Assembly (NCBI GenBank): GCA_015680685.1
Contig: MNCI01000399.1
Location: 103,044-167,043 of the forward strand
Origin: Gnetum montanum
Lineage: Eukaryota > Plantae > Gnetophyta
Reading direction: 5' to 3'
Length of the DNA: 64,000 nucleotides
Both the position numbers and the translations under genes were made by a program. This document shows, piece after piece, positions 16,731-46,500 of the stretch (within the stretch, counting starts at the first letter, position 1; every line of letters begins with the position of its first letter). The notes beneath the pieces were generated by a model that did no database searches, had not been told where the DNA came from, and saw only the letters and a list, made by a program, of their open reading frames with translations.

Positions 16731-17099
16731 ATGGCGCTGGTTAAGACTCCAGGACCATGTCCAAGTCGGATCCCGTGGCTTTTCCGCAGTGAAAGCTTAG
16801 GAGCTCATTCTCATTCTCAATCGGCTTGCACGCTACCGCCGCTTTCGCAGTTTAGCGGAAGCAAATGTGCTTTGTTGGAGGCATTCCCAAAGCCAGTTCC
16901 GCCGAGCAATTCCTCTTCCTCTTCTTATTATGCTGCCAAAAGAGCTGGACTTTTGTTTCGCACCGTGAAAGCCGAGGCCGTTGTAGGCAACAAGAAGCTC
17001 AATTTGCAGGAGTACATGATTACTTTGCAAAAGCCGCTTGGAATCAGATTTGGTGTCACTGTCAATAACACAGTTTTCGTCCACTCCCTCAGGAAAGGA
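16731..17099 (+). CDS. LSF1: Phosphoglucan phosphatase LSF1, exon 1 (transit peptide and start of PDZ-like domain)
   Basis: ATG at 16731, a Ser/Pro/Ala-rich transit-like N-terminus, then KLNLQEYMITLQKPLGIRF...VFVHSLRKG, matching the plant LSF1 motif MNLNEYMVTLEKPLGIRF. Donor GGA|GTATGC at 17100, phase 0 (123 codons). Confidence 0.93.
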
Positions 17100-18919
17100 G
17101 TATGCGATTTCTTGAATTTCTTGCCCTGTTATTTCTTGTATTCAAAACTCCTGGCCTATTTTTGTTTTTAGTAGCCTTGTAATGATCCTTTGTGCCAGTT
17201 GAAATTTCGATATACGCCGTTATATAGCAATTGTAAGATTACAATCGTGGATACAACCTACCAGTGTAAGATGATTTTAATGAGATTGACTGTCACCCAA
17301 CGTTCAAATGATAATTCTTTGCTTTCGCGTCTATGCTGCAACGCTGCATTTTATGAACTCCTTACGTTACTCTTCTGTTTTCTTTTTTAATTGTTTTATT
17401 TGGCCATGTTACTTCTTGTTGTTCCTTTTCTTTGTTTTATGTTGTCCTTTATCCCTGAAGAAATATCAGGCTTGGTTTTCCATTTCACACGTAAACATCA
17501 AATGGGAAGTCAATTTTTTTTTGCGATGGTTTGGATGTGGATGGGATGATTGTACTGTATGGGTCCAAAACCACTCAACCAAACTAATACCTTTCGATGC
17601 ATCCATATTTCATATTTCCCATGTCACCATACTTGGCAAAAAATACCTTCTTCTTTGCTTGTTTTTGCTCATTCGCATTTCCTTACCAACAGCTCTGGTC
17701 ACTTTTTCGCAGCTCCATTACTTACAAATTCTCTCAGGCTTTGATCTTTTTTTTTGCTATCATATTAAGCTGTAGCTTTGGAGAAATGCTTATGCTTTCA
17801 GTGATACATCGACCTTTATGTTTAGTCATGATTGAAAGCTACTAATTAGCCATCATTGTTTTATTCCTAATTGTTTGTAATTATGAAAAACTTTGAATTC
17901 TTAGTCTTAAGTGTGCAAGAAGATGTGTGGCATGATTTTTTTTTTTCTAATGAAAGACGTTACATTTCTGCCAGAAGCTCTGTTAGAACATGTCTGAGAA
18001 AAGATTTGTTACAGAAAGGAAGATACATTTTAAATATTCATTCATTCAGCATGCTATCAAATTCAGAGAAGAGTAACGTAAAATAAGAGCAAGAATAATG
18101 TTCTTGCAAATTTAAAATGCATCCGGAATAAACATATTCTGCTCTGCTCTATACTGTTTTTGCCTATAATGATTTTTTGGTTACTTTGTTGTTCCCATTG
18201 TAAAATTTGTTATGGTTCGGCCTTAATGTTGCTTTGATGTTTGTACAGTGAAATGTTTTGCACTCACACATACATTTTGTTCTGCAAAGTGTTTAAGCTT
18301 GCTGTTACACTAATTGCACGTAGAAGTAATTGAAAAGTAGTATGGTTTGGTCTAGCTGTTTTCCAAAACGGCTGGACCTGTTAAGTTCAATCATCCCTGT
18401 GGATTTCATGTGAGTGCATGTTCAGGTCAGATGTTCATGTTTAGGAATCTCAATTTCAGACGCCTGCTTTACGGTAGCAAGGTCCACTAATGCTATAACT
18501 TCTGTCTTATTAGGCAGTGTCAATACAAAATTATCTTGCAATGTTGTTTTCTGCTACTGCCATGCCGAAGTCATTTTCCACGTTAAGTAGAGGTGTGTTA
18601 ACTATATAGAAATTGATTTACAGTTTTTTTCTTTAAAATATTTGGTAGCCTTCAATGTTGCTTTATTGGGGAAGGTTCTATGAAAGTTGTACACAACAGA
18701 TAAATCCTGGGTTTTGAAGCATGCACACACGATTTATCATAGTACTTAGGAATTTCTGATCCATTCTTGGTGTGGAAGGAACTTGACAAAGATTAAATCA
18801 TGGTGATCATTATGAGTTTGATCAGTAGATGGATGGAATAGCTTCTCAAAGGATGATTATAAGTTTTTCATCTGGCCTTAAAGATGAGGATATGATTAAA
18901 TGGAAAAAAGGTTGTAGAT

Positions 18920-20146
18920 GGTTGTAGGTGACATCGAGGAGGCATTAGGATCTAAATCACTATGGGTGGAGGCCTTGTTGGCAAAGGTGATAGAGTCGGT
19001 GGCAAGGGAAGAGCAGAGTTGGTGGGAATGAAGGTGGGCAAAGAGGGAGGTAGCATTCTAGCAATAGTTGGAGGAAGAGAAGAGGCATTCGGAATGTAGG
19101 ATAGTAGAGCATGAGGAAACCTTCCAGCAGCAGTTGGAGGACATTGAGCGGCATTTTCTTGATGTCGCAAGGGAGGAGGGTAGGAGGTAGGACCTTGTAG
19201 AAGCGGTGGCATGGGAATCGTTGGAGATGGAGCTGCGGCTGTCATCCGGGCTCAACTTTAGGAGGAGGCTTAGGAATAGGAGTAGCAGCAGTACGAAGAG
19301 CAAGAGTGTAAGGAAAGGGAGAAGGAGGAGGAGGTGTAGATCTAGCAGAGGCTGGATGTGGCACATGAGCACAAGGTGCACGTTGGGTTGCGATAGGGGC
19401 ATTGCCCCTACATTATTTTGAACATCAGGAGAGGGACCCTGTGGAGTTCTTTGCGTCAGGGATGGGAACTACATCTAGATAACAAAGGGGATCCGACTAC
19501 ATGTGCATGACTAGAGGTAGCTTTCAAAACCATTCAAGAAGCATCTATGTTTGTGGATTCGGAAAGGCACCAGTTGGTTTTGGATAATGTGCATAGTCAG
19601 GAGAGGCTGGATTGTGACTGCACTCACCTACCGCTTAGGCTTTAATGGGGGTGGGTGGGGGTTGGAGTCCTTTTGGTTTTTTCTACCAGTTTTTTTTTGT
19701 CCTTTTGCTTTGCGGGGTTAGGGTCCAGATGATATGCGGGACCTTTGTCTTTTGTTTAGAATTTCTATTGAGGGTGTAAGCATGATGGCCAAGTCTTGTT
19801 TTTTTCTGTAGATTGGGTTGGTTTTCTATGAGCAGCTAGAGGGAGGCTCCATGTTTTATGGTTGACCCGGGGGGCGGCGGGGTGGGTTGTGGCGGGGTGT
19901 TATATCCTTGAGTAAGTTTGGAGGTTTTTTTTTTTTTTTGAGGTATTGGGGGGTAACACTCCCCCGAATTATTTTGTCGTGGGTTTAGTTGGGGGTTGGG
20001 CGGTGTTACCAAGTGCTTGGGAGGGGGTTCCCTCCCCTCATGAAATTTTGTCTAATGGTTATTTTCCACTTACAGCATCAGTTGTTGTGGAGCATCATGT
20101 ACATAGTGAGTTTATTTAATTTACCTGAACTTCTTAAAAAAAAAAA
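18920..20146 (+). mobile_element. 5'-truncated LINE 3' end with coiled coil and degenerate J-domain (J-LINE, divergent subfamily)
   Basis: E/Q/R-rich coding, then AHEH...GHCPYIILNI...LHLDNKG...AFKTIQEASMFVDSERHQLVLDNVH..RLDCDC, stop at 19643-19645, G/T-rich 3' UTR, poly(A) at about 20136-20146. The 5' boundary is approximate. Confidence 0.75.
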
Positions 20147-20351
20147 GTATATGCAATTTAGAAGACAAAAAATTGAAAATCCATAAAAAGCAATATGTTC
20201 AACTTTAAAATATAAAAACATTATCATGAACATCAACATAACTTAATTGTTGATACTTCCATATACATTACAAAAAATTTCAAATGTAAGCTACACTGTA
20301 GTATTCATTCACTATCATTTAAAACAAATGAGTTGAAGAATGTCTAAAATC

Positions 20352-20597
20352 ACCTACTAAAGTGATTCAAAATGAGTTGAAGAATGCATTGTTGAGCTCT
20401 TGAAGAATGTGTTGTTGAGCTCCCCAAGAATGTGTTGCTCCTTGCAGAAAACTGTGCACTCAAAGTGTTGAAAACCTACTAAAGTGATTCAAAATGAGTT
20501 GAAGAATGCATTGTTGAGCTCTTGAAGAATGTGTTGTTGAGCTTCCCAAGAATGTGTTGCTTCTTGCAAAAAAATGTGCACTCAAAGTGTTGAAAAC
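20352..20597 (+). repeat. Tandem duplication, 2 x 122 bp
   Basis: ACCTACTAAAGTGATTCAAAATGAG... begins at 20352 and again at 20474, nearly identical. Confidence 0.9.
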
Positions 20598-23559
20598 CTT
20601 TAAAACTGCTGATGATGTATGTTTAGACTGTTATATGCGCATTCCTTCTTTTATAGCTATATTAAGTCATGAATTTTGTTACTGGATAGTATTTTAATGT
20701 TTAGTGTTAAAAAAGTATAAACTTCTAATTGGTATTTTTTAAGATTCCAAAATTTTTTGGAATCACTTGGAATTATCCAGAATTGCTTGGAACCATCCAG
20801 AATTGTGATTCCAAACTGGATCATGATCTAGAACAGATTCGGATCTTGATCTAGAATCACTTGGATCACCATCTCGATCCAATCTTCATAAGTATGGTTT
20901 AAACATAAGAAGCTCACCATTGTTGGACCACATCAAGGGCTAAGATTGAATGGGAGCTGAAGAGTTTTTAAATATCCTGGAACATAGGTATTATATATGT
21001 CTGTTTAAACACATCCTCACTTAGAAATAAATGGAACATAATTACATAAAATGGTTTTATAATGTAATATCTTATTAACGAACAATTCATTTACAATGTT
21101 TATAACATAACATCTGTTTAATATACAAATTACAGTCGTACATAAAAAATATTTGGTCTCACATTATTTCATCACTTGAAAGGATTTGGCTTCACTCGTC
21201 TTTTAATTTTTCAAATGCTTGTGCAATCATCCTGCAACACAAGAATTCTTAATGTGATGGGGCATTGTCTTTGATTCTACTTGTCTATTTTGCATATCTA
21301 AAATCAAATATCTGCATCGTATTTTTATGCATTTTGATTTTTCTCATAATGTCTGGAACAATTTGCGTGACTACAATTTGAATTTCCCATTTTCATTGAC
21401 TTTGCTGTAAGTAATCTAAGGCTAGCATTGGTAAGGTACTTACTTTAAATATAGACTTAGCTTGCACTATTAATCTTTGTATGTAATTAGATTTTGTGTA
21501 AAAAGAATAAGGCTTTTCAGCAAAAATTTGCAACCCCAGTAGTTTCTGGATGCTGCTTTTTATATACAGACCCTGTGTACCAGGCCATGATTACAATGAT
21601 GAGGAGGCTAGGATACATTTGTTGTTACTTGATAATAATCAATTTACCCAGGGTTGACTCTTGTTCTGTAAGTTTTGAATTAGTGCATTCCGTGAGTTTG
21701 TCCTGTTCTACCTATGGAGGCTAAGGCATACATCGTTGATGTTTTTTAGGTGGATATTCAGAGCACTCATGATATTGGCTTTAGGTGAAGGGGGTATGAA
21801 TAACATGGATTATAAATTTTTTACTAATTGATGGCAAGTTTTAGTTGCTGTGTCATAGTCTTTAGGCTTCTCTTTATGGCAGTACCCCTAGATAGACATG
21901 CCTTGGTGGTGATCGTGGTGTTAGCATAATGATTGGCCAATTGATATCCCTTTGACCCTTTGTTCCTTGAGGAAATTTTGCATGTTATCCATGTTTATAA
22001 TGAAGAGGTAAGTGGAGAGTGGATGTACCTCTTGAGGAGGTGAAAAAGCTCATGTGGATCCATTAAAATCTATTGCGAAATCTGTTCTTGGGATGTTAAG
22101 GCATAGGCTTACAAAGCAATAATGAAACCGTTTCCTGTTTATGATATGTTGCAGTTCCCTAGCTCAGCATGTTATAAGCTTTTGCTATATGTAGTTCTAG
22201 AAACATGTCTGGAAATGTAAATCTGTTACAAGAATGTGTGAGTCCATGATTATGTATGATTTAGTCTTGAATCTACTTGCTGCTAACAAATCTTTCCTGG
22301 TTTGAAGAAATAAGCATAGTGTAACACCCATCTGTAGGGAGCAAGAGTTAACAGCCAAAGTCTCCAACAAGCTGGCTGAAAATGCAAGGGTAAGCTTTCT
22401 TTTTCTCAAATAATAGATCAATGATTAGAAATTGGACTTGCATATATACCAGCATAGACAAGGATCAATTAAAATAAAGAATAACACAGAAAATTATATG
22501 ATGCAAAGAATGATTCATGGATCTAGTAGGAAGAGAATGCCAATATGAGGAGTGATATCTCACGATACACTATGCATCCAAGGTGCAGTACAAATGCAAA
22601 ACATCTAAAACATAAAATCATATCCATAACCATCTAGCTCAACAAGAAGCCAATTAACTTAAATCATTTCACATAGCAATCTTAAATTATGCACAACCAA
22701 AATGTAATCAATCATACGGAAAGTCAAAGTAACGGTAAACATATTATTTGTGTACTTGATAAATTGCAAATTGAAATCCAAAATAATATAGCAATCTCAA
22801 CATTTATTCACATCCTTGCTGCCAATGATATATATTCAATATTCAACAAAAAGGGAAAATTAGAAACTAGATTGTGTACATTAATAAACCTGTTTACACA
22901 AATAGCTAGGCAGTAAACACAAGAATCTTATGAAAAAATGGTTCACAAATCAAATTATTGAAACTCTTAACAAAAAAATTAAAAACACCTACAACTAACA
23001 TCAATTAATAAACCATACTAAATAATGTTAACAAATAATTTGATAGATTTTTCTAATATTTAGTATATATAATATCATATAAACTCTAGTTACTAATAAA
23101 GATATAGGATAGGCTTTGCTACCTTGGATTTTGCTTATGATAATAAAGAAACGAATTCTGATTTTCTGATGGACAACCACATGAGGTTTGAACAAGACTT
23201 AGAATAAATACTCATGCTTCTTAAGCATAATTTTTGATAAAAGACAACCATGAAAGTAAATAGTGACAACAAAAATCTATGCAAGATTCTTTTGATACAA
23301 TGTATAAGTCTGATTTTTTATTTATTTATGGATCAGATTTTGATTCTTCTCAAATTATAAAAATAGATCTGATGTTGGTCATCAACAAATTTGTTCAACC
23401 CAATAGTTGGCCACAAGAAACATATAAATCAATAGTTTCAAATCCATTCAGTTGCACAATAATGCTATTTTATTTTGTTTTAGCAGCCCTCACAATAAAA
23501 ATAATGCACACCACTAACATTTAATTAAGCTATCCAATTTACCAACAATAGAGAAAAGA

Positions 23560-23966
23560 GGGCTGCGTTGGAGATGCAACCGTCGACATCAAGACAGGAG
23601 TGGTAGGAGAGTCATGATTCCAGAATGGGAATAGGGCCAACTTATTCGAGGGAAAGGCAAGAGTTGGGGAGTTGGGCAGCTCCTACGATGTCGACAGAGC
23701 TCCAAGCGATGCTTGAGAAGGCAAGTAAGGTTGCTGCTGACAACACAAGGGCGGAGGAAATGGCTTTGTGGGAAACGAGTTGGAGGCAGCGGGAGGAAGA
23801 TATCCGATGGATTATAGACCTTGTTGAGCAGCAACGTGCAGAATTGCAGCAAATGAGAGAGCATAGGAGGCAAAGGCTGGAGCAAACCTATAGATGGGAG
23901 CTAAGGTTCGAATTGGAAGAGGAAGTGAGAAGGGAGCTCCAAATAGAGATGGCATGGGGAAGAGGA
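23560..23966 (+). mobile_element. GC-rich coiled-coil coding fragment, probably from the J-LINE cargo, cut by an LTR
   Basis: ORF 23625 (ELQAMLEKASKVAADNTRAEEMALWETSW...RWELRFELEEEVRRELQ) resembles the coiled coil of the other copies (EELRQATQRAADEAREAERKEWEAKW). It stops at the LTR start 23967. Confidence 0.5.
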
Positions 23967-24827
23967 TGTAACGAACCACTTCTCCTTGAGTTTTTGCATT
24001 AACGATATGTTTTGTTGACAACTAGTGTGTGTGCTTTTTTTGGACTATGGTGGAAATGGCTAATTGGAATAGTAACAAATTTGTTGATCATATTTTTATA
24101 TGTATTATGATTAAATGTTTAAATACTTTATGCATAAGAAATATGATTTAAAATACATGATGGAAATGTTTTAAAATAATAATAATAAATGATATATGGG
24201 AAAACAAAATATTTTTTGTTCTATTTCAACAGAGATGTTGAAAAACAAAGGACAAAGCTCTAAGGTGTGCCTCAAGAGCTAAAACAAGTATGTTGAGATG
24301 CAAAAGAATGCTCATATAGAGGAACTTGACCTATGAATCAAGTTGAAGGAACCTGACCCATGAATCAGGGATATTGTGTGCAAATATTGTAGCTTTATAT
24401 TTTATTTTATCCAAATGTGATGCATTGCTCTTTTTAGTTTAAAATAGTAGAGTATAAGTACTCTCTCCATTACTGTAGAAAGGTCACGTGATGACCTTTC
24501 AAGGCTTGTAAGATGATGGAAAAATTCACATCACTGATGACCTGAAAAGGAAGTGCCTTATTTGATTATGTATCTTGAACTGTCCCTATCATGAATCTAT
24601 TTGAAAACTCTTTCCTTGCATCTTATGACAATTCTGAATGATAAAGAGATAGATATTATGCTAGAATGTTTTGTAATTATCAAGAGGAATTGAACCTGAG
24701 ATTTAGCAAAATCTAAATTCTGAAATATCAAAAATTGTTGATTTAGGAATTGAACTTGCAACCTGTGAATATACATATTTTATTGATTTTATTATAGTGA
24801 TCATGAAGAGAATTGAACTCATGACCC

Positions 24828-24830
<3 letters not shown>

Positions 24831-24870
<40 letters not shown>
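24831..24870 (+). repeat. (GA)20 microsatellite inside LTR copy A
   Basis: Perfect GA run. The sister LTRs have only a short CT tract at this position. Confidence 0.95.
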
Positions 24871-24873
<3 letters not shown>

Positions 24874-25380
24874 CCTTAAAAAGAAAGAAAAGAATACAAA
24901 CAGTCCCCAAGAAGTCAGTTACAAGAAACCATTCATTATCCCTTATTCCACCTACAAATAGGAAGAGGAGGAGAGGAAAAAAGAGAGACATAAGGCAAAA
25001 CTAGCTGTGCAAAACACAAAAAAAGAGGGATACAACAACAAGGAGTGTGGCTGAGAAGGGAGAGAAGACTGTGGTTGCTAAAAGAGATAGCAAGGAGAAA
25101 GAAATCAAGGGAGGCATAGCAATTCAATATTTTGATAATTTCTTATAGTAACAAGATATCTAAGCAAGGAGGTAAAATGATCCATCTTTGTTATGTTTGA
25201 TAATGGTCAGCAAGGGTTGATTTTCTCAAACTTTTCTCTTCTTGCTTTTCTAACCACCTTTCACAATGCTTGTATACAAATACCAAGATTGTTGTTGTAA
25301 GCTTAGATTTTTTTGATATCCTTTATTACCCTTTTTTTGGATCTCTCTACCTATCCTTTGCACTCTCACACCTAAATGAC

Positions 25381-26543
25381 TTTTTTTTGAGAGAGTATTC
25401 GGGATTTTATAATTGGAAATTGCAAATATGTTACAAGATTACAATTGGGGGGTCACCGNNNNNNNNNNNNNNNNNNNNNNNNNNNNNNNNNNNNNNNNNN
25501 NNNNNNNNNNNNNNNNNNNNNNNNNNNNNNNNNNNNNNNNNNNNNNNNNNNNNNNNNNNNNNNNNNNNNNNNNNNNNNNNNNNNNNNNNNNNNNNNNNNN
25601 NNNNNNNNNNNNNNNNNNNNNNNNNNNNNNNNNNNNNNNNNNNNNNNNNNNNNNNNNNNNNNNNNNNNNNNNNNNNNNNNNNNNNNNNNNNNNNNNNNNN
25701 NNNNNNNNNNNNNNNNNNNNNNNNNNNNNNNNNNNNCTAGCGCTTCGTAGGAAGCTGCTGGCATGCACAGTCGGGGCGCACTAGCTCGTGAAGAATGTCG
25801 AGAGTATTCCGATGCTCCTCTGTATCCATGAAGCTGGCCGCCTGTTGGACGCCCTGCATGGCTGCCTCCCATATGCTTTTATCCTTGTGGGAGGCTCCGG
25901 CATCGGGGTGGCAATGTGCCGAGGTTCGGCGGATATATCGACGAAGGTCGCCCCAAGAGCTCTCACAGCTGATTCCTAAAGTAAGGTACGGGCATTGTCC
26001 CCCCCATAACCATTGTCGGGTATTGTGCTCGTGGGCACGGTCCAGTTGCCTCTGCCTCTGCTCCTCCTCCTCCTGAAGCCGGTCCCGCTCCACCTGTTCC
26101 ACCTGCTGTCTCTGTCTCCGGGCCTCTTCCTCCTGTGCCAGCTCCTCCCTCACTTGGGCTCTGATTTCATCGATGAGCCGAGCCCTGGCGGCTTCTGCCA
26201 ACAGGTCCTGTTGTTTCGCCCGTTCCTGCTCCCACTCCTTAAACTGGGCTTCTAACTCGTTGCGGGCCTGGGCGAGGGCTTTAGTCCATTTTGCCTCCCA
26301 TTCCTTCCTTTCTGCCTCTCGGGCTTCTTCCGCCACCCTCTTCCGCAGTTCCTCGTTCCAAGCTTCCTGGTTGGAGGTTTCTGGGGGGGGAGAGGTTGAT
26401 TGGTCCTGACGCTCAGGGGGGCGCCTTTCCCGCGGGGTCCTTTGGCTCCACGAGATATTAGAGCCCCAAGGGCCCTAGCCCCTTCCCAGCTCGGGCACCA
26501 TCGTCGCCTTAGGCGACCTGGGGGGGGCGTCCCGGGGACACCC

Positions 26544-26577
<34 letters not shown>

Positions 26578-26984
26578 AGGACGAGGGGTGCTGCTCCCCT
26601 TCTGCCCCTCTCCATAGAGCCAAAATCAAACCCGAGTGGCAGCCCCGACGTTTGAGGCTAAGGGTCTCATTAAAGTAGTGGGGGAGGTTGACCAGGTAGC
26701 CCCCTTTAAGGCAACGGAGAAAGGCGAAATGTAGGCCCTGTAGCTTGGACCCGTTGCTAGACTGGACGAAGAATCTGTCCACTAGATCTGCACCGTGGGC
26801 CAAGAGGCGGGGGAGGGAAGATCTAGGCACCTGTTTGCTCCTGGTCCTGGGAACTGGCCCATCAAAGAATAGCTCTGCATCTTGGAGGCCATGGGTGGAG
26901 GGCAGGATGGTCTCCCCCACAATGGGGGCCCCCAGACAGCTGGCAATCGCTACTTTTGTGACCCAGATCTCATGCCTCCTGAAG
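25381..26984 (-). mobile_element. 5'-truncated J-LINE copy 1 (accessory domain, coiled coil, intact HPD J-domain)
   Basis: Poly(T) from 25381. The 3' UTR matches the reverse complement of 30890-30964. TSD AAATGACTT at 25374-25382 and 26985-26993. ORFs 26252-27067 and 25737-26336, the latter ending PYLTLGISCESSWGDLRRYIRRTSAHCHPDAG...AMQGVQQAASFMDTEEHRNTLD. Contains the N-gap. Confidence 0.9.
25459..25736. other. Assembly gap (278 N)
   Basis: Run of N. It falls in the LINE 3' UTR and its size is close to the homologous UTR segment of the copy at 30639-30890. Confidence 1.
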
Positions 26985-27837
26985 AAATGACTTAGATGAG
27001 AGTTGTTTCTGTAATGATTCTGAAACACCCATAATGATTTGGGGCATTTTTGGCAAAGGATTGCCAATAGGGGCTATGGATCCTTGATATGAGGATTGGT
27101 ACCGTCGGCAGAAAGTGAGAGTATCCTTGGGCCCATCAGTAATTGTGAATGCTTTAAAATTGTTGAATTCTTGGATTTTGGTTGATGAACCCTCTCCTTT
27201 TGAATGCATAAATCTTGGATCTGAATCTTGAATTATACTTATTTTTTTTCCTAGACCTTCTCAAGTCTGATTTTAATATCTTTCTATAAGTTGATGGAGT
27301 GGGGGAAAACCTAGGATGTTAATTTATGGTTGTGATTTATCTATTCTCTACTATTGAACATATGAACTTCCTGATTAAATGATTACTAGTAAAATGGTTA
27401 CAAGAGTTAAATTTGGATCTTGTTTTTGTGTGGTTGGAAATTATAAAAATATTATTATGTGATTGAACAAATATGAGATTATTAATTTATCTACTTTTGT
27501 GGTCATTTCTTTGGTTTTAAAATGTGCAAATGATCCTAATTAAATATTTCTTTTAGGTTGAATAATAAAATGTTTGATTTTTTTAATCTGATGAATCTTG
27601 CATATATGTTTTACTATGGCTATTTCTTTATAAAATTATCTCTTGATTCATAATATTGATTGACTTGTTTTAGAGCTAGATCTAGGTGTTGTTGATTTCG
27701 TTTTAATTTTATAGGTTAATGTTAGTTTGATTGTTGTAAAAAGAAAGCCACCTGGGCATTTTCTTCTTTCAACTAGCTTTCTTTCTAGGGGGCTTTGGGT
27801 GCTAGCTCTTGCTCCATATGAATGGGTGTTTCTGAAT

Positions 27838-30800
27838 TGTTACATAAACAACTCTCATCCAAGTCATTTATGTGAGAATGTAGAGGATGGGCGGAGAGAT
27901 AAAAAAAAAGTATCCTTTGATGGGGGGGGGGGGCGCGGTTGTGGGGCCTCTCCTCCCCAGGTCGGGGGCTGAGGCAAGGAGACCCACTCTCACCCCTCCT
28001 CTTCATCATCGCCATGGACTTAATGCAACACTACTGCAGCACATCAGGGGTGGATGGTCTGAACATTGCCGGGGTGGCATGTCGGGCCGAACACTATGCA
28101 GACGATACGATGTTGCTCAGTAGGGCAGTGGTCCCGCAGGCACGTTGCATCAACGTTGCTCTGTCCCACCTGGCTGTCAAGTTGGCGCTGGAAATCAATA
28201 GTACCAAATCTTCAGCCCACTTCATTAATGTGGATGAACAAGTTAAAAATCGGGTAATACAAGTTTTGAATATCCTGCCAGGGACAAACAGTGACACATA
28301 TCTGGGCATCCCCCTCTTCGGGTGGGGATGGACCATGGTGTGAGGCCCGCTGTTAGAAAAAATCGAAAGAAGAATGGGCCACTGGGCGAATAGATTCCTA
28401 AGCCGCAAAGGTTGCTTGCTTGTGGCTACTGGAATCCTCATGGCAATCGCTCGTTTCGTGGCTGCCGTTGCCACCCCCCCAAATGTCATCATCAATGCAG
28501 TTAACACGCTGATTTGTAGCTTCATCTGGGAGGGGGGCAAAGGGGGGAGCAAAATCCATTTGGTCCATTGGGAACGGGTGGTGCGCCCCCGAAACGCGGG
28601 TGTGTTGGGCATCACGTCATTCGAGGATGAGTTGATGCTGGGACAACAACAGTTAGTGCTTCGGTTTTTGCACCTGCATAGAGCACTGATCCTGTGGATT
28701 TGCATCATGAATGCCAAATATCTGCGTTGGGAAACGGGGGCACGGGACTCTAGGCCCTGGCAGGCGCTGTGCCGGCACACACGTGCGATGCAGGCCCTGG
28801 GATGGGGGGGCCTCGAGCCGCGAGCCCTTCTGACTACCAAATATCCTCGAATTGACGGTTGGCAGCGGATCTGGCAAGGGCAGTTGCCTGAAAAAATCAA
28901 AATCTTTTTGTGGCTATTCAAGCGCGATGCGCTGCCCGTACGTGCCTTGCTGTGACGGCGTGGAATACTGCAAAGCGACACGTGTCCTGCATGTGGCGCT
29001 GCTACAGAGACATCACAACATTTCGCGTTTGAATGTGCTTACATGCACGCCACGTGGCGCACGGCGGCGGTGCCCCCTCCGAGGCACCTCATGGGTGACT
29101 CTTGGGCCACACTACTTTTATGGGTAGCGTGGAAAGCACGAAATAACATTGTTTTTCGGTAGAAACAGCGCCCCCCGCAGCGGCTGGTCTCCTAGGCTCT
29201 CAACGCATGGAAGGGAATCGAGGCGACGATGGGAATCACACCCACATTCGAGCCGGACTGCGCTGCGTTCCAGGAGGACGAGGCGCTCTAGCAGATGGTG
29301 ACCCAATGCGGCTAGTCTGACCCTCTGCAACGGCTGGTCAGGGATCCAGATCTGGTAGACGATGCGTTCTTCTCCAACTGGGCCAACGACCGTACCTTTT
29401 TCCGAGGCCGTGAAATCTTGATTACAGAATCTTCAATTGCCAGCTGTCTGGGGGCTCTGATTGATGGAGAGGTCATTCTGCCCTCCACCTGCAGCCTCCA
29501 GGACGCTGAATTGTTCTTTGATGGGCCCGTTCCTCGAACCAGGAGCAGACAGGTACCCAGATCTTCCCTGCCCCGCCTATGGGCCCAGGGCGCAGATATG
29601 GTGAACCAATTTTTTGTCCAGTCTGGCAACGGCTCCAAATTGCAGGGCCTACACTTTGCTTTTCTATGCTGTCTCAAGTTGGGTCGCCAGGTCAACCTCC
29701 CCCACTTCTTTAAGGAGGCCCTTCTGCTCAAGCGCCACGGCCGCCACTCTGGTTTAATTCTAGCGTTGTGGTGGAGGGCAGAGGGGGGGCAGCACCTGTT
29801 GTCCTCTGCCCCCCCATGGGGCTCTCTTCGAAGCACCCCCTCAGCAAGGCCACAGGACCCTACGACGTTGCCCAGACAGGGGGGCAGTTGGCCCCTCTGG
29901 GAATCCACCTTTACGCAGGGCCGGAGGACCCAGCAGGAGCGGCGCCCCCCCGAACGCCCTGACAGACTAGTTTCCTCCCCACCAGAGACCTCTGGCCATG
30001 GGAACTGGAATGAGGAGCTTCGGCAGGCCACACAGAGGGCAGCAGATGAGGCTCGGGAGGCAGAGAGGAAGGAATGGGAGGCCAAATGGAATGAAGCCCT
30101 TGTGCAGGCCTGGGCCGACCTGGAAGCCCAGTTCTCTGAGCACGAGTAGGAGCAGGTGAGGCAGCAGGATCTCATGGCTGAAGCTGCCAGGGCTCGCCTA
30201 ATTGATGAAATCAGGGCCCAAGTGCGAGATGAATTGATCCAAGAGGACGAGGCCTAGAGACGACGTGAGCAGGTGGAGCAGGCAGAGCAGGAGCGGCTTC
30301 AGGAGGAGGAGGACTAGTGATAGCGGCAGCTTGACCGCGCCCACGAGCACAACACCTGATAATGGCTAAGAGGGGGGCGATGCCCATACCTCATTCTTGG
30401 CATCAGCTGTGAGAGCTCTTGGGCTGAGCTTAGACGACATATCTGTCGAACTTCGACGTGCTTCCATCCAGATGCGGGAGCTTCGCAGGCGGACATGAGC
30501 TGACGGGAGTCGGCCATGCAGGGCATCCAGTAGGCGGCTAGTTTCATGGACACGGAGGACCACCGAAACACTTTGGATATCCTCCATGAACTGGAGTGCC
30601 CCGACTGCGCCTGCCGACGACTGTCGACGAACCCATAAGGGGTTGGCCCGAGTGGTGGGGGACGCTTGCCCCCCTCTATCGGGTCAATGCCCCCTGATCT
30701 TCTCCGCTGTTTTGGCTCGTCCACTGGGTGGGGGTGCCCCCCTCTCTGTTTCCTGGGGGGTGCCCCCCCTCCCCCGCTGTTGCCCAGGGTTGGCTCCAGG

Positions 30801-32301
30801 GTCAGTGTTTGTTTATGTTCTGTCGTTGGAGCTGTTTTGATTAATTTGGGGATCCTCCCCTCTCATGGAGGGGCCATTCCTGATGGCCCACCATTTGTAA
30901 TCTCTTGTACCATATTTTGTGTTTCTCAGTTATATAATCCCGACTACTTTCAAAAAAAAAAAAACAATCTAAACTTACAACAATAATCTTGATATTTTCA
31001 TACAAGCATTGTGAAAGTGGTTAGTCAAGCAAGAAGAGAGAAGTTTGAGAAAATCAGCCCTTGCTGGCCATTATCAAACATAACAGAGATGGATCATTTT
31101 ACCTCCTTGCTTAGATATTTTGTTTACTAGGAGGAATTATTAGAATATTGAATTGCTATGCCACACTTGTTTTCTTTCTCCTTGCTATCTCTTGTAGCAG
31201 GGACAGTTTTCTCTCCCTTCCCAGCCACACTCCTTGTTGCTGTATCCCTCTTTTTTTTTTTTGTTTTGCTTAGGTACTTTTGCCTTGTGTGTTTTTTTTT
31301 CCTGTCCTCTTCCTATTTGTAGGTGGAATAGGGGATAATTGATGGTTTCTTGTAACTAACTTCTTTGGAACTGTTTGTATTCTTTTCTTTCCTTTTAAAG
31401 GTTTTTTTGTCTCTCTTTCTTAGCAATGAGTCATGAGTTCAATTCTCTTCATGATCACTATAAATAAAATATGTATATTCACAAGTTGTAGGTTCAATTC
31501 CTAAATCAACAATTTTTGATATTTTAGAATTTAGAGTTTGCTAAATCTCAGGTTCTATTCCTCTTGATAATTACAAAACATTCCAGCATAATATCTATCT
31601 TTTTATCATTTAGAATTGTCATAAGATGCAAGGAAAGATAGATTCATGATAAGGGCAGTTTAAGATACATAATCAAATAAGGCACCTTCTTTTTTAGGTT
31701 ATCAATAATGTGAATTTTCCCATCATCTTATGAGCCTTGAAAGGTCATCACGTGACTTTTCTACTGCCATGCAGAGGGTACTTATACTCTACTATTTTAC
31801 ACTAAAAAGAGCAATGCATCACATTTAGATAAAAGAATAAAATATAAGGTTACAATATTTGCACACAATATCCCTGATTCATGGGTTGATTCATAGGTCA
31901 AAGTTCCTCAGTATGAACATTCTTTTGCATCTCAACATACTTATTTTAGCTCTTGTGGCACACCTTAGAGTATTGCCCTCTATTTTTCTTTTGTTTCTCA
32001 ACATCTCTGTTGAAATAGAACAAAAAATATTTTGTTTTCCCATATATTAATTGTTATTATTATTTTAAAACATTCCCAACATGTATTTTAAATCATATTT
32101 CTTATGCATAAAGTATTTAAACATTTAATCATAATACATATAAAAATTTGGTCAACAAATTTATTACTATTCCAATTAGCCATTTCCACCACAGTCCAAA
32201 CAAAGCACACACACGACTTCTTAACAAAACATGCACACAGACACACAGTAAGACTATTACAATCGTTAACACAAAAGCTCAAGGAGAAGTGGTATGTTAC
32301 A
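27838..32301 (-). repeat. LTR copy B (tandem extra LTR), interrupted by a J-LINE
   Basis: TGTTACATAAACAACTCTCATCC at 27838. LTR sequence resumes after the poly(A) at 30965 and runs to GTGGTATGTTACA at 32301. Confidence 0.85.
27911..30964 (+). mobile_element. 5'-truncated J-LINE copy 2: L1-type RT, zf-RVT, accessory domain, coiled coil and J-domain in one frame
   Basis: RGLRQGDPLSPLLF, HYADD, TYLGIPL, CPACG..ETSQH..FEC and WKARN are followed in the same frame by MGITPTFEP..., CPYLILGIS...FHPDAG (CAT CCA GAT 30465-30473) and TAA at 30636-30638. About 15 point stops, no frameshift. Poly(A) at 30952-30964. Confidence 0.93.
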
Positions 32302-35300
32302 AACTCTCATCCAAGTCATTTAGGTGTGAGAGTGCAGAGGATGGGTGAAGAGATCCAAAAAAAGAAATCAAGGTTTCAACAATCTAAGCTTACAACAACA
32401 ATGTTGATAATTTTATACAAGCATTGTAATGGTGGTTAGGCAAGTAAGAAGAGAGAAGTTTGAGAAAATCAACCCTTGTTGGCCATTATCAAACATAACA
32501 GAGATGGATCTTTTTACCTCCTTGCTTAGATATCTTGCTTATTAGGAGGAATTACCAGAAGATTGGATTACTATGCAAAACTTGTTTTCTTTCTCCTTGC
32601 TATCTCATGTAGCAGCCACAGTCTTTTCTCCCTTCCCAACCACACTTCCTGCTGCTATATCTCTTTTTTTCTATCCTGCTTAATTACTTTTGCCTTGTGT
32701 GTTTTTTTTCCTCTCCTCTTCTCCCTATTTGTAGGTGGAATAAGGGATAATGGATGGTTTCTTGTAACTGACTTCTTGGGAACTGTTTATATTTTTTTCT
32801 TTCTTTTTAAAGTTCTTTCTCTTTTTTTCTTAGCAATGAGTCATGAGTTCAATTCTCTTCATGATCACTATAAAAAAATCAATAAAATACGTATATTCAT
32901 AAGTTGCAGGTTCAATTTCTAAATCAACAATTTTTGATATTTTAAAGTTCAGATTTTTTTAGATCTCAGGTTCAATTCCTCTTGGTAATTACAAAACATT
33001 TTAGCATAATATCTATCTCTTTATCATTTTGAATTGTTATAAGATGCAAGGAAAAAGTTTTCAAAATAGATTCATGATTAGGGAAGTTTAAGATATATAG
33101 TTAGAAAAGGCACCTTCTTTTTCAAGTCATTAGCGATGTGAATTTTCCCATCATCATATGAGCCTTGAAAGGTCATCACGTGACCTTTCTCCATGTAGGC
33201 ATGGAGAGGGTACTTATACTCTACTATTTTAAACTAAAAAGAGCAATGCATCACATTTAGATAAAATAAAATAAAAAAGTAAAATATAAAGCTATAGTAT
33301 TTGCACACAATATCCTTAATTCATGGGTTAGGTTCTTTCAACTTGATTCATAGGTCAAGTTCCTTAGTATGAGCATTCTTTTTTATCTCAACATACCTGT
33401 TTTAGCTCTTGCAGCACACCTCAGAGTATTGTCCTCTATTTTTCTTTTGTTTTTCAACATCTTTGTTGAAATAGAACAAAAAATATTTTGTTTTCCCATA
33501 TATTTATTATTATTTTTATTTTAAAACATTCGTAGCATGTATTTTAAAGAATATTGTTTATGCATCATAATACATATAAAAATCTAGTCAACAAATTTAT
33601 TACTATTCCAATTAGCCATTTCCACCATAGTCCAAACAAAGCACACACACAACTTGTCAACAAAACATGTACACAAACACACAGAAAGACTATTACAATT
33701 GTTAACACAAAAACTTAAGGAGAAGTGGTTCATGACATCCTCCTCCCCTTAAGACATTTCCTCCTGGAAATGTTTAAATAGGTGGGGGTAGCTCTATTTG
33801 ACCACATCCTCCATCTCCCAAGAGGTTTTAGATCAATCCTCATTCCAATCAAGCTAAACTTGGGGCACTGTATGGTGCCTGAGATTGAGCATCCTCTAGT
33901 TTGAAATCCGGATTGGTTGAACTTGGACAGTACAATTTGGGCTGACTTGAAGGTTTTCCCATCACAAACAATGCTTAGAATCATAAACATACCTCCTTAA
34001 CATAGAAACATGAAAAATATTATGTAAAGATGATAAACTAGGAGGTAAAGCTATTCTATAAGCAATAGGACCAATTTTTCTTAGACTTCAAAAGGGCCAA
34101 TAAATCTAGGTTTAAGTTTGTTCCTTTTAACACCTATAATGACATTTTTAAAGGGTTGGACTTTTAGAAATACTTTATCTCCAACAGAAAATTGACTCCT
34201 TCTATTATCTGTGTAACTCTTTTGTCTATCTTGTGCTTGCTTTAGTCTCTCTTTAATTTGATTCACCTTTAGTTGCAAATCCAAACCCAAGAGCTAGGAA
34301 CTCTACACTTTCTACCATACAAAGCTTCATAAGGTGCCATTTCAATGTTGCTTTGGTAGTTGTTATTGTAGACAAATTCTACCAAGGGCAATACCTTATC
34401 CCAAGTTTTGTGATGATCCAATACATTGGTTTTTAAAAGATCTTCTACCAACTAATTTGTTCTTTTAGCTTGACCATTAGTTTGTGGATGATAGGCTATG
34501 CTGAAATTTAGTTTTGTTCCAAGAGCTTGCTAAATAGCTTGCCAAAAATGAGATGTAAACTTTGGATCCCTGTTTGAAATGATTTTCTTAGGTATGCCAT
34601 GCAATCTAACTATTTCTTAAATATAAATTTCTGCAATCTTTCTAGCATTGTAATCTAACTTCACTTTGATGAAGTGTGCTGACTTTGTTAGCCTATCAAT
34701 TACCACCATTATGGAATCATATCCTCAAAGGACTTTAGGTAACCCAACAATAAAATCTATTCCAATCTCATCCCATTTCCATTTTGGAATATTGTGTGGT
34801 TGTAAATGACCTGCTGGTACTTGATGTTTAGCCTTAACTTGTTGACACGTTAAACACCTTGCCACAAACTCAGCAACATCTTTTTTCATTCCAGGCCACC
34901 AAAATTGTTTTTTGATTCCATGTAGTATTTCTGTTGCCCCTAGATGACTTGTATAAACTATTTCATGGTGTTCTTGCATTACCAAATTTCTAAGTTTTGC
35001 ATTGGCTGGAACATATAAATGATCTTAGAAAAGTAGCAAACCATCAGCAGTAATTTTAAATCCATTTTCTAGTTGACCTAGGTTCTTCTTTTCAAATTTC
35101 TCAGCAAAGAACTTATCATTTCCAGTCCCTTTTTAATTAAATCAGCAATTGTACTCTGAGGTAAAAAGGTTCCCTTAACATACCTCCTTCGGCTAAGAGC
35201 ATTTGCCACCTTGTTTCCTCTACCCTCATGATAAAGGAGCTCAAAATCATCATCACACAAGAATTCTAACCAACCTCTTTGCCTCATGTTTAAATTAGGT

Positions 35301-38300
35301 TGCATGAAAATGTATTTCAAATTTTGATGATCTAACCATACTCTAAATTTCTTTCCATACAAATAATGTCTCCATATTTGCAAAGCATGGACCATTGCTG
35401 CAAGTTCCAAATCATGCACAGGGTAATTGTGTTCATGAGGTTTTAATTGTCTTGATCCATAAGCAACTACCTGATTTTGCTACATTAAAACATAGCCTAA
35501 TCCCTCACTGGAGGCATATGTATATACATCAAATTGAACATTTTCTAAAGGCATGATTAATATAGGAGTTGATGCTAACAATTTTTTCAGGTTTTGGAAA
35601 GCCAAAGTACATTTCTTTGACCATTGGAATTGATTGCTCTTCTTTAACAATGATGTCAAAGGGGTTGAAATGTTTGAAAAATCTTTTACAAACCTGCGGT
35701 AGTAGCTTGCTAACCCCAAGAAACTTCTGACCTCTGTAACATCCTCTATAACATTATCAGGTTGAGGCCAACTAATTATTGCATCAATTTTATCTGGATC
35801 AATGACTAACCCTTTGTCTACCAAGACATGACCAAGAAACCTTATTTCAGATTGCCAAAATACACGCTTGCTCTTACTTGCATACAACTTATGTATCCTA
35901 ACGGTCATAATGTCCATACCTTGTTTGAAAGGCTATTTTTGAAATGTCTTCTTCTTTGATTCTTAGTTGGTAATATCCTGACTTTAAACCAATTTTTGAA
36001 GATACCTTTGCTTGTTTGAGCTGATAAAAAAGCTCATCAATCCTTGGAAGAGGATATTTATTCTTAATAGTTACCTTGTTTAGCTGTCGATAATTAATGC
36101 ATAGGCGTAAAGTTCCATCTTTTTCCTTGATGAATAGAATTGGTGCTCCTCATGGTGACACACTAGGCCTAATGAATCCCTTCTTTAATAGTTCTTCAAG
36201 TTGGGTTTTTAACTCATGCATCTTAGCTGGTGACATTCTATATGGTGCCCGTGAGGTTGGAGCACTCCCTGGAAGAATTTCAATCCCAAACTCTACCTTC
36301 CTTTTTGGTGGCATTTTCGGTCACTCATTAGTAAACACATCTTTGAATTCATCTACAACTAGACATGCCAATGGTGTCTTCTCTTGTTGGCAATCATTAT
36401 CACTGTTAGTTGCATACAGTTTGACCAAAATTGTTGCTTTTGATGTTTGCATCTTTTGCACCATTTGTTTTGTAGAAATAATGTTTCTTGAGAAATCCCA
36501 AGGTTGACAGAAAATTTTCTGGTTTATTTCTCCATTGTTAATTTCTATGCAGTTCTATCCACAATTAATTTTTGCCTTATTTTCACCAACCAGTCCATAC
36601 CCAACACCACATCGTATTATCCCAAATTCATAACAAGGAAGTCCATAACAGAAGGTTGATTCATGATTTTTATCTCACAACTAGGCACAAAACATTCTAA
36701 GGCTTTATGGTCACCTCAAGCTAATTCCACCTTTCCCATACATGGTAAGAGATGAATTTTACTCCCTAATCTTTTAACCAAAGAATCTGATATAAATGAA
36801 TTTGTTGATCCATTTTTAAAAAGAATGGTAACAGATTGAAAATGAATGATACCTATTGTTTCTTGGACTGATGCTTGATATTGCACACTTGTTGGAACAT
36901 TTGTTGCAGCATATAATTGGTGAAAGCTTGTTGGCTGGAGATGTTTGTTTATTTCCTTCAAGAGCCTTTGTTTGTGGGCATTGAGCTTGAAAATGGGCCC
37001 CTCCACATGTCCAACAACCCTTCCTTGGCTCTCTAAGGGTTGATCCTTCACCTTGTATCATTCCTATTTGATTTTTTTCATCAAATCATTTTCCATTTGA
37101 TCCTTGACTTCTTGGTACTTTAAATTGCTACTTGGATTTTTAGATACTGTGGTGGATTTATCAAAATTTTTGCTATTAAATTTGTCCTTTGTGATTTTCC
37201 CGTGGCATTAGTTCCTTTATGGTTTGTTGATAGCAATTCCTTCTTCCTAATGAATTCAACTTCCACAAGTTTAGCTTTATCAATAACTGCAAATAAGTTA
37301 TCCAACTCAAACAAATGAACTTTTTCTTGGGCTGAAGGATGCAAGCTATTGATAAAGTTTCTGATTCTCATGTATTCTGGAATTTCTGGTGTATACATCA
37401 TTAAATTAACAAACTCACGTTCATATTCAGCCACATTCTTGGACCCTTTGCTGTAGGTGCAAGTATTCCTATCTTTTTTGTTCCACATGTGCTTTTGAAA
37501 TATATCTTGTTCTGAACAATTGTACAAATTCATTTCATTCAACACCTTCGTTATGAATTTTTACTTTTTCAGTTCTTCACCAATTGGCAGCATCACCTGC
37601 CAAAACATGAGTTGCAAGAAGAACTCTTTCTCTAGCATTTGTATGTAACAGTTCAAACAAATCATTCATCATGAACAGCCAAGATTCAGCTTGCTCTCCA
37701 CTTGAAACTCCATCAAATGATGGTGGCTTGCACTTCAGAAATTCTTGCAACTTGATAGCTCCATTATTTCCTTTATTTTGATATTGTCTTGCCTCATTTT
37801 CCTCATGATTATGTACTATTTGCTGTATATATTGTTGTATAGCTATAGTAAGCAAAGTGATAGAATGGGCAAGTGCTGCAAAGGCCTCTTGCCAATGTTG
37901 AGGAGGCTCATTCTCTTGGTTGCTAGAACTGGCACCATGTTTTTTCTCTTGTAAGTCTTCATTGTACTTATTGTTCAAAGGCCTGTACACACTTTGAATG
38001 CTATGCTTTAGTTGCCATGATAATTTATTCCAAATCAACACTGAAGCCATTTCTTCTCAATTTAGGCATATGAAAGACAAACTAACACCACATCAAACAA
38101 TGCACAAATTCAGACTTTATAAGAGGTTTGAAGGAAAGTAAAAGAAAGCCAAACCTAGCTCTTTGATAACAAAATGTTATTCCCCTCTCCTCCTCTTCTT
38201 GTTATTGACTTCTTGAGAACTGTTTATATTCTTTTCTTTCTTTTTAATGTTTTCTCTCTTTTTTTTTCTCAACAATGAGTCATGAGTTCAATTCTCTTGA

Positions 38301-43573: not shown

Positions 43574-46500
43574 GTGATATCTTTTTAGTTTTTATTCAGT
43601 TGCCACATATTCCAGTATGGTTTTTTTTTTTAAAACAGAAATGAGTATTGAAGGTTTAGTATTGTAATTACACTTCCATGCTTTAATTAATCACAACATG
43701 ACAATTTAGTCTATGTATTTTGTTTTGAACACGCTAATTTATCATTCTTTTGAACAATTTGTTTTATCAACAACTTTACACATAAAGCAGGTAGCAAGAA
43801 TTTAAGGTAGGATTATTAATATTTTATGAATGCATATACATTGCTTTTGATGCAGCCTACTTATCATGAGATGTTAAGCCATGAAATGTACCACCCTCCT
43901 TTGTATTCTTCTAGGGCGGGAATTTATATTGGTAGATCTTTTAAATTTGTGATTAAAAATTCAGTGGTACCTTTAAAATCTCAGGGAAAAGGTTGCCTTT
44001 GCAGGGCACCAATATTTTCCTTTTTTAATTAAAAGTGGCTTTTTCTTTGCTGTTATATTCCAATTTTTGGTAGCTTTTTTTTTTGACATTTTTTTCAAAA
44101 AAAAAAAAGCTTGTATTTTCCTGTGACTTTTTGAAATCACAGGTGTTTTTTTGGGCCGTCAAACTTTGACTTTTGCCGACTTTTCAAAATAGTTTCACAC
44201 CGTAACCCAATAACTTTTCTGAGTCTGATTCATGCCCTATAAGAACTCAATAGCGAAAAAATAAACTTGCAATTGGTTGTTTCTTCTTCATCATCCTTGC
44301 ATTGTTTCAACGGTCATGGGTTGGCAAAAATCTCTTTAAAGAAAAAAAAAACTTGCAATTGGTTGCATGTAGTTGTAAAATTGATTTTCTGCCTTCGTAC
44401 AATCTGGATTTCTGCCACATATTATGAAGAACAAGGAATTTCTGCTCCACATACCATGACTAATAATTTAGGGCATCAATGTTCTACTTCAATGTTCTGT
44501 TCTAATGATTTCAAGGTTGTGCTAGATAAATCTCTTTCCAGTATGTTCTAATCTTTGTCCCCGCTTTAGGACACTTGACATCAGGTAGAGAAGATTCTAA
44601 TATGTAATTCTACAATCTAACTCAACCAAAGCATGCCTGTGTAAACAAGTTACAGTTCTTTTTCTTTGTTTTTGCCATTATTATGTATGTGTAAGAGGTA
44701 ACAATGTTTGATGTTGATGCTAGTGTGTACATGGAAAAATTTATTTATATAAATATACTTAGCGAACTTTTTTATTACAATTTGTTGCTATCTTGATAGC
44801 TCAGCAATTTAAATCCCATGAAACAAATTGTATAATGGGTTGTCTTAAAATATGATTTTGGTCGAGAGGCCAACTCATCTCGCAGGATAGGGGGAGGGGG
44901 GAGTGCATTTGTCGCCCTCCATGTCATGTGCCACGTAAGGTCCCATGAAATGGGAAAAAACATGAATCGAAGAGCCACACCTTTTCATATTCCCGTTGCA
45001 CAGAATGTGAACCAAAGAGCCATAGCTTTTCATATTTCCGCTGCACACATAAAAAGGCCAAACGCAACCAAATGCAGAATGGGAATGGGAATGAGAATGA
45101 GAATTCTATTTCCATTCTGTCTTCGTCTCCATCTGCAACTGCTGTTGCAGGCCACCTAGCCCAACCGAACCAGCTTTGATGACGCCAGCTTCAGAGCTCT
45201 GCTAGAGCGTTGGAAAGGCACATATGATGGTGGCCCATGCTTTAGCTATAATAACAAGCTCATTGACATGTGCTTCTTCAACCAAGGTAGTAATAAGGCA
45301 ATAGGCCAGTCGTCCCTTGCTGCATCCTTGCTTAACACTGAAGGCCACGACATGCACACATCATCGACAATCATAATACAATTTTTGTTATAATAGCTAA
45401 AAGATTCCTTCATTTAGGTTTCTTTTTTTTGGATAAAATTTATATATGAATTAGGCCAATATGTTTCTTGAGTAGTTTTGTTTGAATGTATGTTTTAAGC
45501 ATTAAATTTTGCAGATAGGGGTAGGATGAGGGGTAGAGCCAGAGGCATTTGAGGAAAGATGGTAATGGCTACAGTTGAAGTTGTAGCCCTAGGGGAAGTG
45601 TCTTCTGAAGTTTTTGTGTCAACAATAGCCTTTGGTTATTGGAATCTTTTTCTAGAAACAAACTTTCTGCTAGTCTTTTTATGTGTGTTTTTGTTAATTT
45701 TTTTATAGTGAATTGTAACGTGTTGAACATTACATTTTGATGGTTTTGTGCAATTTTCATAGTTTCACTTCAAGTTGAGCTCTTCTGTCATCAGTACTTA
45801 GCATGCCTTCCTATACATTTGCATTCCCAATGCAAAAACATTCCAAAGTTTGGTTCTGTTCTTTTTTCAATGTTTTCTGGAGTGGCAGGGAATTATGAAA
45901 TTGTAATTTTTTGCTACTATCTTGAGTAATCTTCTTTTGCTACACCCTTTTTCAATGTAAAGGAACATTTGTAAGTTCATTTTCTCTTTATCTCATTGTA
46001 TATTTTATGTAGGTTTTATCATTTATATGGTTGTGTTTTGAAATTCAGCAGTTACCATGGAGTAGATGCATTCAGTTGTTACGATTGTGACTGCTTTTTT
46101 GTGTGCAATATGCATTTTAATAAAATGCAAAAGCGTTAGCATTTTTGCTAGCACATGAAAATTATTAGCCAATTTGAGATGTTGGCCTGACTTCGGTCAT
46201 AATTTTAACAATTTTTCCTACTTATTGGGAGGACTTAAAGAGTTCAAATTTGATAATTTCTTCTTACCTTCTCGCATGTAGTGAGGCCTTTTCTTTATGT
46301 ACATATTCTTTGATTGATGGAATCTAATGGATGATATGGTTGTTAACCTGGTAAATTTTAAAAACGAGAACTTCTGCATCTCTGACAGCCTAGACCCTGG
46401 GAAGATCTCCGACAAGATCATGCTGTGATGATTCTAGCTAATGTCGAGGAAAATGGTGACGAGCTCTCTGTCGACGCACATGTCTTGCCATAATCATAAA

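Follow-up and report, generated by a model that had tools for sequence, protein, structure and literature searches.

A 64,000-nucleotide stretch of Gnetum montanum DNA (hereafter the window) was analysed for an L1-type long interspersed nuclear element (LINE) at positions 27911-30964 (+), called copy A. Copy A is probably a dead member of a high-copy plant L1-clade LINE family, whose second open reading frame (ORF2; endonuclease, reverse transcriptase (RT) and zf-RVT) gained a C-terminal module of about 500 amino acids (aa) that ends in a J-domain and would dock Hsp70 in cis. The module consisted of a domain of about 150 aa (the accessory domain), a variable Pro-rich linker, a charged spacer of about 115 aa, a J-domain of about 70 aa, in which the His-Pro-Asp (HPD) motif is accompanied by a basic helix II, and a short tail rich in Cys. 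The simplest reading, and one that is supported, is that the accessory domain, linker, spacer, J-domain and Cys tail are all part of the ORF2 polypeptide.

Copy A was distinguished from the surrounding AT-rich DNA (about 33% GC) by a GC content of 54-59%. DNA and RNA read ends of other copies continued upstream of 27929, and copy A was thus recognized as 5'-truncated inside the RT. The frame from 27912 comprised 909 codons up to the terminal TAA (30636-30638) and contained 15 internal stops and no frameshift; an extra stop was present at 27918, adjoining the 5' junction. The ORFs listed at 27939, 28374 and 29418, the HPD codons (30465-30473) and the terminal TAA were located in a single frame broken only by point stops, as had been stated in a preliminary description of this DNA. 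A run of 12 G (27922-27933) was noted at the 5' end; compared with an S-F-D-I-D-G motif in another copy (copy D, below), the frame appears to shift there.

From 5' to 3' (all on the + strand), copy A contained the C-terminal part of the RT (27939-28340; Pfam RVT_1 profile positions 117-203, expectation value (E) 2.3e-9), the zf-RVT zinc-binding region (28830-29057; two Pfam halves with E 2.4e-4 and 1.1e-4, respectively, and a stop at 28953 between them), a connector from the WKARN motif onward to the cargo (29058-29315; four stops), the conserved accessory domain (29316-29790), the Pro-rich linker (29791-30005), an E/R/Q/A-rich charged stretch of about 115 aa (30006-30356; presumably helical, judged by composition), the J-domain with helices I-IV (30384-30578; stops at 30501 and 30531), the C-x2-C-x-C tail with the TAA stop (30597-30638), and a 3' untranslated region (UTR) of about 310 nt with a GC hairpin motif and a conserved AT-rich end, followed by A13 (30639-30964, with A13 at 30952-30964). 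An unbroken ORF of 243 aa connected the accessory domain with the charged stretch. The order RT, zf-RVT, WKARN, accessory domain, Pro-rich linker, J segment, 3' UTR and poly(A) had been proposed before and was found again; the label 'coiled coil' for the charged stretch was abandoned, as heptad periodicity was absent, and the wording 'charged, presumably helical stretch' is used instead.

Three further copies were found by tblastn of the window with copy A as the query: copy B (25381-26985, -), copy C (19346-19642, +) and copy D (54416-59975, -). The DNA of copies A and B was about 75% identical, and that of their flanks, which belong to a host repeat of 1.4 kb, about 90%; from this it follows that A and B were inserted independently and represent different subfamily members. 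Copies C and D belong to subfamilies of far greater divergence.

The stops of copy A were compared with the corresponding codons elsewhere. Aligned to copy B, eight of nine stops faced CAG, CGA, CAA or CGG, each one C>T change away from a stop, and the ninth faced ATA. The TGA at 28341-28343 was TGG in every other contig overlying the position (41-53 contigs in each of three runs); for copy A, 40 of about 2,060 rows of read-contig variants were inspected. Stops were masked with X in the local alignments only, and natural sequences were used throughout, with no consensus and no mended ORF. Across zf-RVT, connector and accessory domain, copies A and D were aligned in one frame (267 aa, 38% identical), and of their eight stops not one was common to both. 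The accessory domain, spacer and J-domain might instead form a third ORF downstream of ORF2 under its own translation, and the dense stops of the connector (four in 52 codons in A, three in D) could suggest the native ORF2 terminator. No stop position, however, was common to the two copies; each stop was opposite a sense codon (W, Q, A, K, R or P), with two TAG codons of copy A facing TGG in D and a TAA of copy D facing CAG in A. The connector was moreover aligned in one frame with conserved residues, including TMG and FEP, and this frame was the RT frame in both subfamilies. A separately translated cargo is thus quite improbable, and a continuous ORF2 is preferred.

The J-domain tests were run on the intact segment of copy B (96 aa). 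The J part matched the Pfam DnaJ profile (PF00226) over positions 2-63 of 63 with E 2.1e-4 and 21.8 bits (gathering score 27.8), and the NCBIfam DnaJ models matched the segment with E of about 0.01. When all PDB sequences were searched with phmmer, 12 of the 15 best matches were J-domains, with HPD in register and E from 0.08 to 2. With a profile built from the corresponding pieces of A, B and C, whole-domain matches were obtained to a Plasmodium Hsp40 (E 1.4e-3), DNAJB12 (6.5e-3), DNAJC8 (7e-3) and E. coli DnaJ (0.027). In the ESM Atlas feature search, DnaJ clusters made up 29 of 30 named matches, with a top score of 0.92. The AlphaFold2 (AF2) model of the B segment, built from a five-row alignment and of low confidence (predicted local distance difference test (pLDDT) 64), had helices at residues 13-16, 25-38, 47-67 and 70-83 with HPD (40-42) in the loop between helices II and III, and thus the four-helix order with the helix II/III hairpin. 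In the Foldseek search of the PDB with this model, the top 30 or so matches were nearly all J-domains (E 0.5-5; TM-score 0.42-0.53 by query, about 0.47, and at most 0.6 by target), and VIA-align against J-domain structures gave Z of 3-5, with the maximum of 5.0 for 1wjz.

At the residue level, the HPD codons were CAT CCA GAT in copy A (30465-30473) and CAC CCC GAT in copy B (25900-25908). The spacing from the helix I Gly to HPD in copy B is presumably that of E. coli DnaJ, and in helix II Arg was found in copy B at the positions aligned, in the PDB sequence search, to those which we take to be R22, K23, K26 and R27 of DnaJ. The helix IV motif of DnaJ, presumably D-x2-K-R-x2-Y-D, appears as T-E-E-H-R-N-T-L-D in copy B. 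The J-domain of copy A was aligned residue for residue with that of copy B; one of its four basic helix II positions was Cys, possibly a decay change.

The scores were weak singly and all concordant, and homology of the last 70 or so aa to J-domains is, on the strength of these sequence and model comparisons, very probable. That J-domain likeness is a chance feature of helical, charged sequence would agree with the lack of any single score above a curated threshold, but five independent methods agreed on both family and register. As a control, the equally poor AF2 model of the accessory domain (pLDDT 48) gave only scattered, unrelated Foldseek matches, and the chance explanation is considered very improbable. 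The proposal that the last segment follows the J-domain pattern was therefore upheld by HPD in the loop, the basic helix II and the agreement of the tests. The Pfam match covered the whole profile and fell short of the gathering score; in the structure prediction and Foldseek search the proposal was upheld by the helix order and the prevalence of J-domains among the top matches, with weak scores.

A conserved descendant of a J-domain might also have lost Hsp70 signalling and serve as a J-like scaffold, in the manner of Pam16/Tim16, for dimerisation, RNP (ribonucleoprotein) binding or, with the flanking Cys and His, zinc binding. Conserved Cys and His residues do flank the domain in all copies, and the scores against canonical J-domains are weak. 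J-like proteins without Hsp70 signalling, however, typically lack HPD, whereas HPD was retained in both well-preserved copies (A and B) despite saturated synonymous divergence, and the four basic helix II positions were retained as well. Such a scaffold is regarded as unlikely, and a J-domain able to signal to Hsp70 remains the favoured interpretation.

Selection on the module was estimated from the ratio of nonsynonymous to synonymous substitution (dN/dS) between copies A and B by the Nei-Gojobori method, with stop codons excluded. The ratios, which are approximate as synonymous sites are saturated between A and B, were 0.15 for the accessory domain, 0.36 for the Pro-rich linker, 0.09 for the charged stretch and 0.07 for the J segment (bootstrap confidence interval 0.04-0.16; proportions of synonymous and nonsynonymous differences (pS and pN) 0.71 and 0.14, respectively). 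The J segment, for which a dN/dS other than neutral had been looked for, was unambiguously protein-coding and constrained while the A and B subfamilies diverged. The accessory domain was 70% identical in aa to that of B and 38% to that of D. The module was part of ORF2, was present in three or more subfamilies of deep divergence and was under strong purifying selection; it therefore served the element's own propagation.

The same conclusion bears on the possibility that template switching or 3' transduction led to a single capture of a host DnaJ gene fragment, now carried as a passenger without a role for the element. LINEs do transduce and capture host sequence in general. In the window, however, the J segment was in frame and upstream of the 3' UTR in four copies of subfamilies only 35-40% identical in protein, its dN/dS was 0.07 and its read depth was equal to that of the RT. 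The passenger explanation is already largely refuted and is hardly credible. What had been proposed instead, that the J segment belongs to the LINE ORF2, was borne out by its position between the 5' junction and the poly(A) or target-site duplication (TSD) in four copies of at least three subfamilies, by the RT frame, by the RT-like depth and by the purifying selection.

For the depth comparison, read contigs from DNA runs of three organisms were aligned to the element with an 80% likeness cut-off. The whole element was covered by contigs from all three organisms. The J bins had a summed depth of about 3900-6500, against about 2800-6000 for the best RT bins, so that the J segment equalled or exceeded the RT in the three organisms; two regions, the Pro-rich linker and the GC-rich portion of the 3' UTR, were covered about 10-fold less deeply. 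At this cut-off the J segment is among the better-conserved parts, and the depth pattern fits an integral 3' part of a LINE family with frequent 5' truncation. Parts of the copy A stretch were found in runs of eight organisms. The oligo-dT RNA reads over the LINE family were derived equally from both strands, mostly at less than 90% likeness, and gave no indication of whether any copy is transcribed in the sense direction.

Several results weigh against an ORF2 that ends in a functional J-domain. Each J-domain score was sub-threshold or weak when taken alone (Pfam 21.8 versus 27.8 bits, Foldseek E above 0.5, VIA-align Z not above 5, pLDDT 64), and the saturation of synonymous sites bears on every dN/dS ratio given above. 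HPD was intact in A and B only; copy C has HLD (CTA versus CCA in A, one C>T change) and the remnant in copy D is without a clear HPD, both of these copies being decayed. An intact full-length ORF2 was not seen among the four copies of the window. In addition, no relatives were found beyond the 64-kb window, and the conservation of HPD is known from the window copies alone.

The searches for relatives were done as follows. No homologue of the 199-aa ORF of copy B (described below) or of the accessory-domain alignment was found in the protein library search. An HMMER scan of 1.84 billion representatives with the charged stretch and J-domain gave one match, to the charged stretch only, and scans of viral contigs and metagenome contigs gave no match.

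Copy B is a young, 5'-truncated insertion that contained the accessory domain, poly-Pro, charged stretch, J-domain, 3' UTR and A8, with the TSD GTCATTT. Its 5' end was inside the accessory domain, and reads of empty sites broke exactly at 26985. The charged stretch and J-domain formed an intact ORF of 199 aa (25740-26336, -), on which Pfam DnaJ was matched with E 5e-4. Between the 5' end and the stop there was one frame change, located in the poly-Pro region around a C29 homopolymer (26546-26574, -; poly-Pro of the linker on the coding strand), which could be due to slippage or to an assembly length error. An assembly gap of 278 N (25459-25736) interrupted the 3' UTR directly after the stop codon.

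In copy C, the end of the charged stretch and a J-like segment with stops were followed by a 3' UTR and a poly(A) at 20136-20146; protein identity was only 35-37% (tblastn to copy B, E 3e-13 and 35% identity). Copy D is a nearly full-length LINE with ORF1 at 59529-59975 (-) and A22 at 54416-54437. ORF1 was seen in copy D only and matched Pfam DUF4283 (E 3e-14) and a CCHC knuckle (E 6e-3). RT, zf-RVT and accessory domain were in a single frame (55448-57273, -) with 38-45% identity to A. A decayed J-like remnant (54666-54884, -) contained Y-I-L-G-L, a basic helix and the C-x2-C-x-C tail, and was accompanied by a decayed charged stretch. No Pfam match for an APE-type endonuclease was obtained with the copy D pieces, where an SRIDW motif was recognized by eye; copies A and B are truncated before this region. 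In all four copies a poly(A) was present after the 3' UTR; of copies A and B, a clear TSD was recognized in B only. A short, weak RT-like fragment at 21875-22022 (-; E 0.006 to copy A) is probably another decayed LINE piece, and a weak tblastn match was also noted at 44843-44988.

The accessory domain, in its A, B and D versions, was without a Pfam match up to E 10; NCBIfam gave no match either, and the ESM Atlas gave no usable match. A plant mobile domain (PMD) or Transposase_32-type domain was considered on account of an I-T-x3-I/L-A-x2-L-G likeness, which was seen by eye only, and is unsupported, as no Pfam match was obtained. The C-x2-C-x-C tail after helix IV was represented by ECPDCAC in A (30597-30614), RPDCAC in B (25764-25781, -), LDCDC in C (19613-19627) and ECRNCEC in D (54666-54707, -), and was accompanied in all four copies by a Cys before helix I (C-P-Y) and by His residues. 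The tail, the C-P-Y Cys and the His residues may together form a small zinc site, reminiscent of Dph4.

In the 3' UTR of copy A, a GC-rich hairpin motif, GGGGATCC..CCCCTCTCATGGAGGGG, was found at 30851-30880, with counterparts in copy C (about 20030-20060) and copy D (about 54560-54590, -), and was common to subfamilies otherwise unalignable in the UTR. The final 70 nt or so before the poly(A) were AT-rich and conserved between A and B. The hairpin and the AT-rich end may be a 3' recognition element for the RT.

Copies A and B were each located inside a copy of the same 1.4-kb host repeat (24000-25380, 26986-27910 and 30965-33000), for which summed depth was 20,000-36,000 in three organisms and which contained a (CT)n microsatellite at 24830-24875. 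In host-repeat coordinates the two insertion points were only about 45 bp apart, and an empty copy was present at 32286-32400. The closely spaced insertion points could reflect a hot spot at the A-rich tract of the repeat, or chance in a very common repeat. Elsewhere in the window, an ORF of 146 aa (16731-17171, +) with a Ser/Pro-rich N-terminus and no Pfam match may represent exon 1 of a host gene whose product carries a transit peptide.

As for the role of the module, HPD and helix II of J-domains dock on ATP-bound Hsp70, trigger hydrolysis and clamp the chaperone on a nearby client. By analogy with this biology, the LINE J-domain would dock host Hsp70 in the ATP state and trigger ATP hydrolysis beside the ORF2 protein (ORF2p), so that the chaperone would be loaded in cis onto ORF2p, a protein of more than 1,600 aa, or onto its RNP. 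Such loading may serve the folding of ORF2p, the assembly, disassembly or remodelling of the RNP, or import. The spacer, long and helical, would serve as a tether, in the way that Hsc70 is brought to a selected client by auxilin or polyomavirus T antigen. The further proposal, that this is a retrotransposon family with a built-in Hsp70 co-chaperone, the first of its kind, with HPD-dependent retrotransposition and an activity linked to the chaperone or heat-stress state, is advanced tentatively and at slightly less than even chances.

Host Hsp70/Hsp40 is required by hepadnavirus RT and by many replication proteins of viruses, and polyomaviruses and several RNA-virus families have internalised a J-domain. 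If the interpretation is true, non-LTR (long terminal repeat) retrotransposons face the same chaperone bottleneck as hepadnaviruses and other viruses, and HPD would offer a natural, genetically separable handle on the step of target-primed reverse transcription at which Hsp70 acts. Acquisition of the J-domain was no bar to a high copy number, because the LINE family occurs in great abundance in at least three related organisms. With the accessory domain, a second conserved domain of unknown fold is added to the LINE repertoire.

In plant L1-clade LINEs, ORF2 encodes an APE endonuclease, RT and zf-RVT, in some with an added RNase H, and RNase H was reportedly described by Smyshlyaev et al. in 2013 as a C-terminal addition to ORF2, a precedent in plant L1. 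The present family shares with them ORF1 with DUF4283 and CCHC (copy D), RVT_1, zf-RVT, WKARN, poly(A), TSD and 5' truncation, and differs from them by an ORF2 extension of about 500 aa with a J-domain at its end; RNase H gave no match. No description of a J-domain in any retrotransposon was found in full-text searches of the literature, with Repbase and Dfam outside the search, and the preliminary statement that no LINE of this architecture is on record was not contradicted. An ORF2 that ends in a J-domain thus appears to be new, while LINEs with an extra C-terminal ORF2 domain are already known. One such case is given by insect R1/TRAS LINEs, in which ORF2 has an extra C-terminal viral superfamily 1 (SF1) helicase domain (PMC4686597, PMC5563155). 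In both, ORF2 gained and kept a C-terminal domain from outside the usual retroelement repertoire; clade, host and domain are different, the insect domain being an enzyme of viral origin and the present one a co-chaperone signalling module.

The layout of the module resembles that of class C J-proteins (auxilin/GAK), with a client-binding part, a spacer and a C-terminal J-domain, and J-domains of the type of Dph4, which combines a J-domain with a Cys-rich zinc finger, were among the structural matches (1wjz, Z 5.0; 2l6l), the LINE having a Cys-rich tail after helix IV. No sequence relationship of these proteins to the LINE was seen beyond the J-domain, and the Cys tail of the LINE is a putative zinc binder. 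In a recent preprint, J-domains were found in polyproteins of 11 RNA-virus families, and an aid to polyprotein folding or assembly was proposed (bioRxiv 10.1101/2022.02.15.480533). Like these polyproteins and the polyomavirus large T antigen, the LINE is a selfish replicator that would encode its own J-domain in a replication protein or polyprotein, with folding, processing or assembly via host Hsp70 as the proposed purpose. The viral J-domains were no closer to the LINE segment in sequence likeness than cellular J-domains (1faf, Z 2.8), and they are often N-terminal, whereas the J-domain described here is located at the C-terminus of the RT of a non-LTR retrotransposon.

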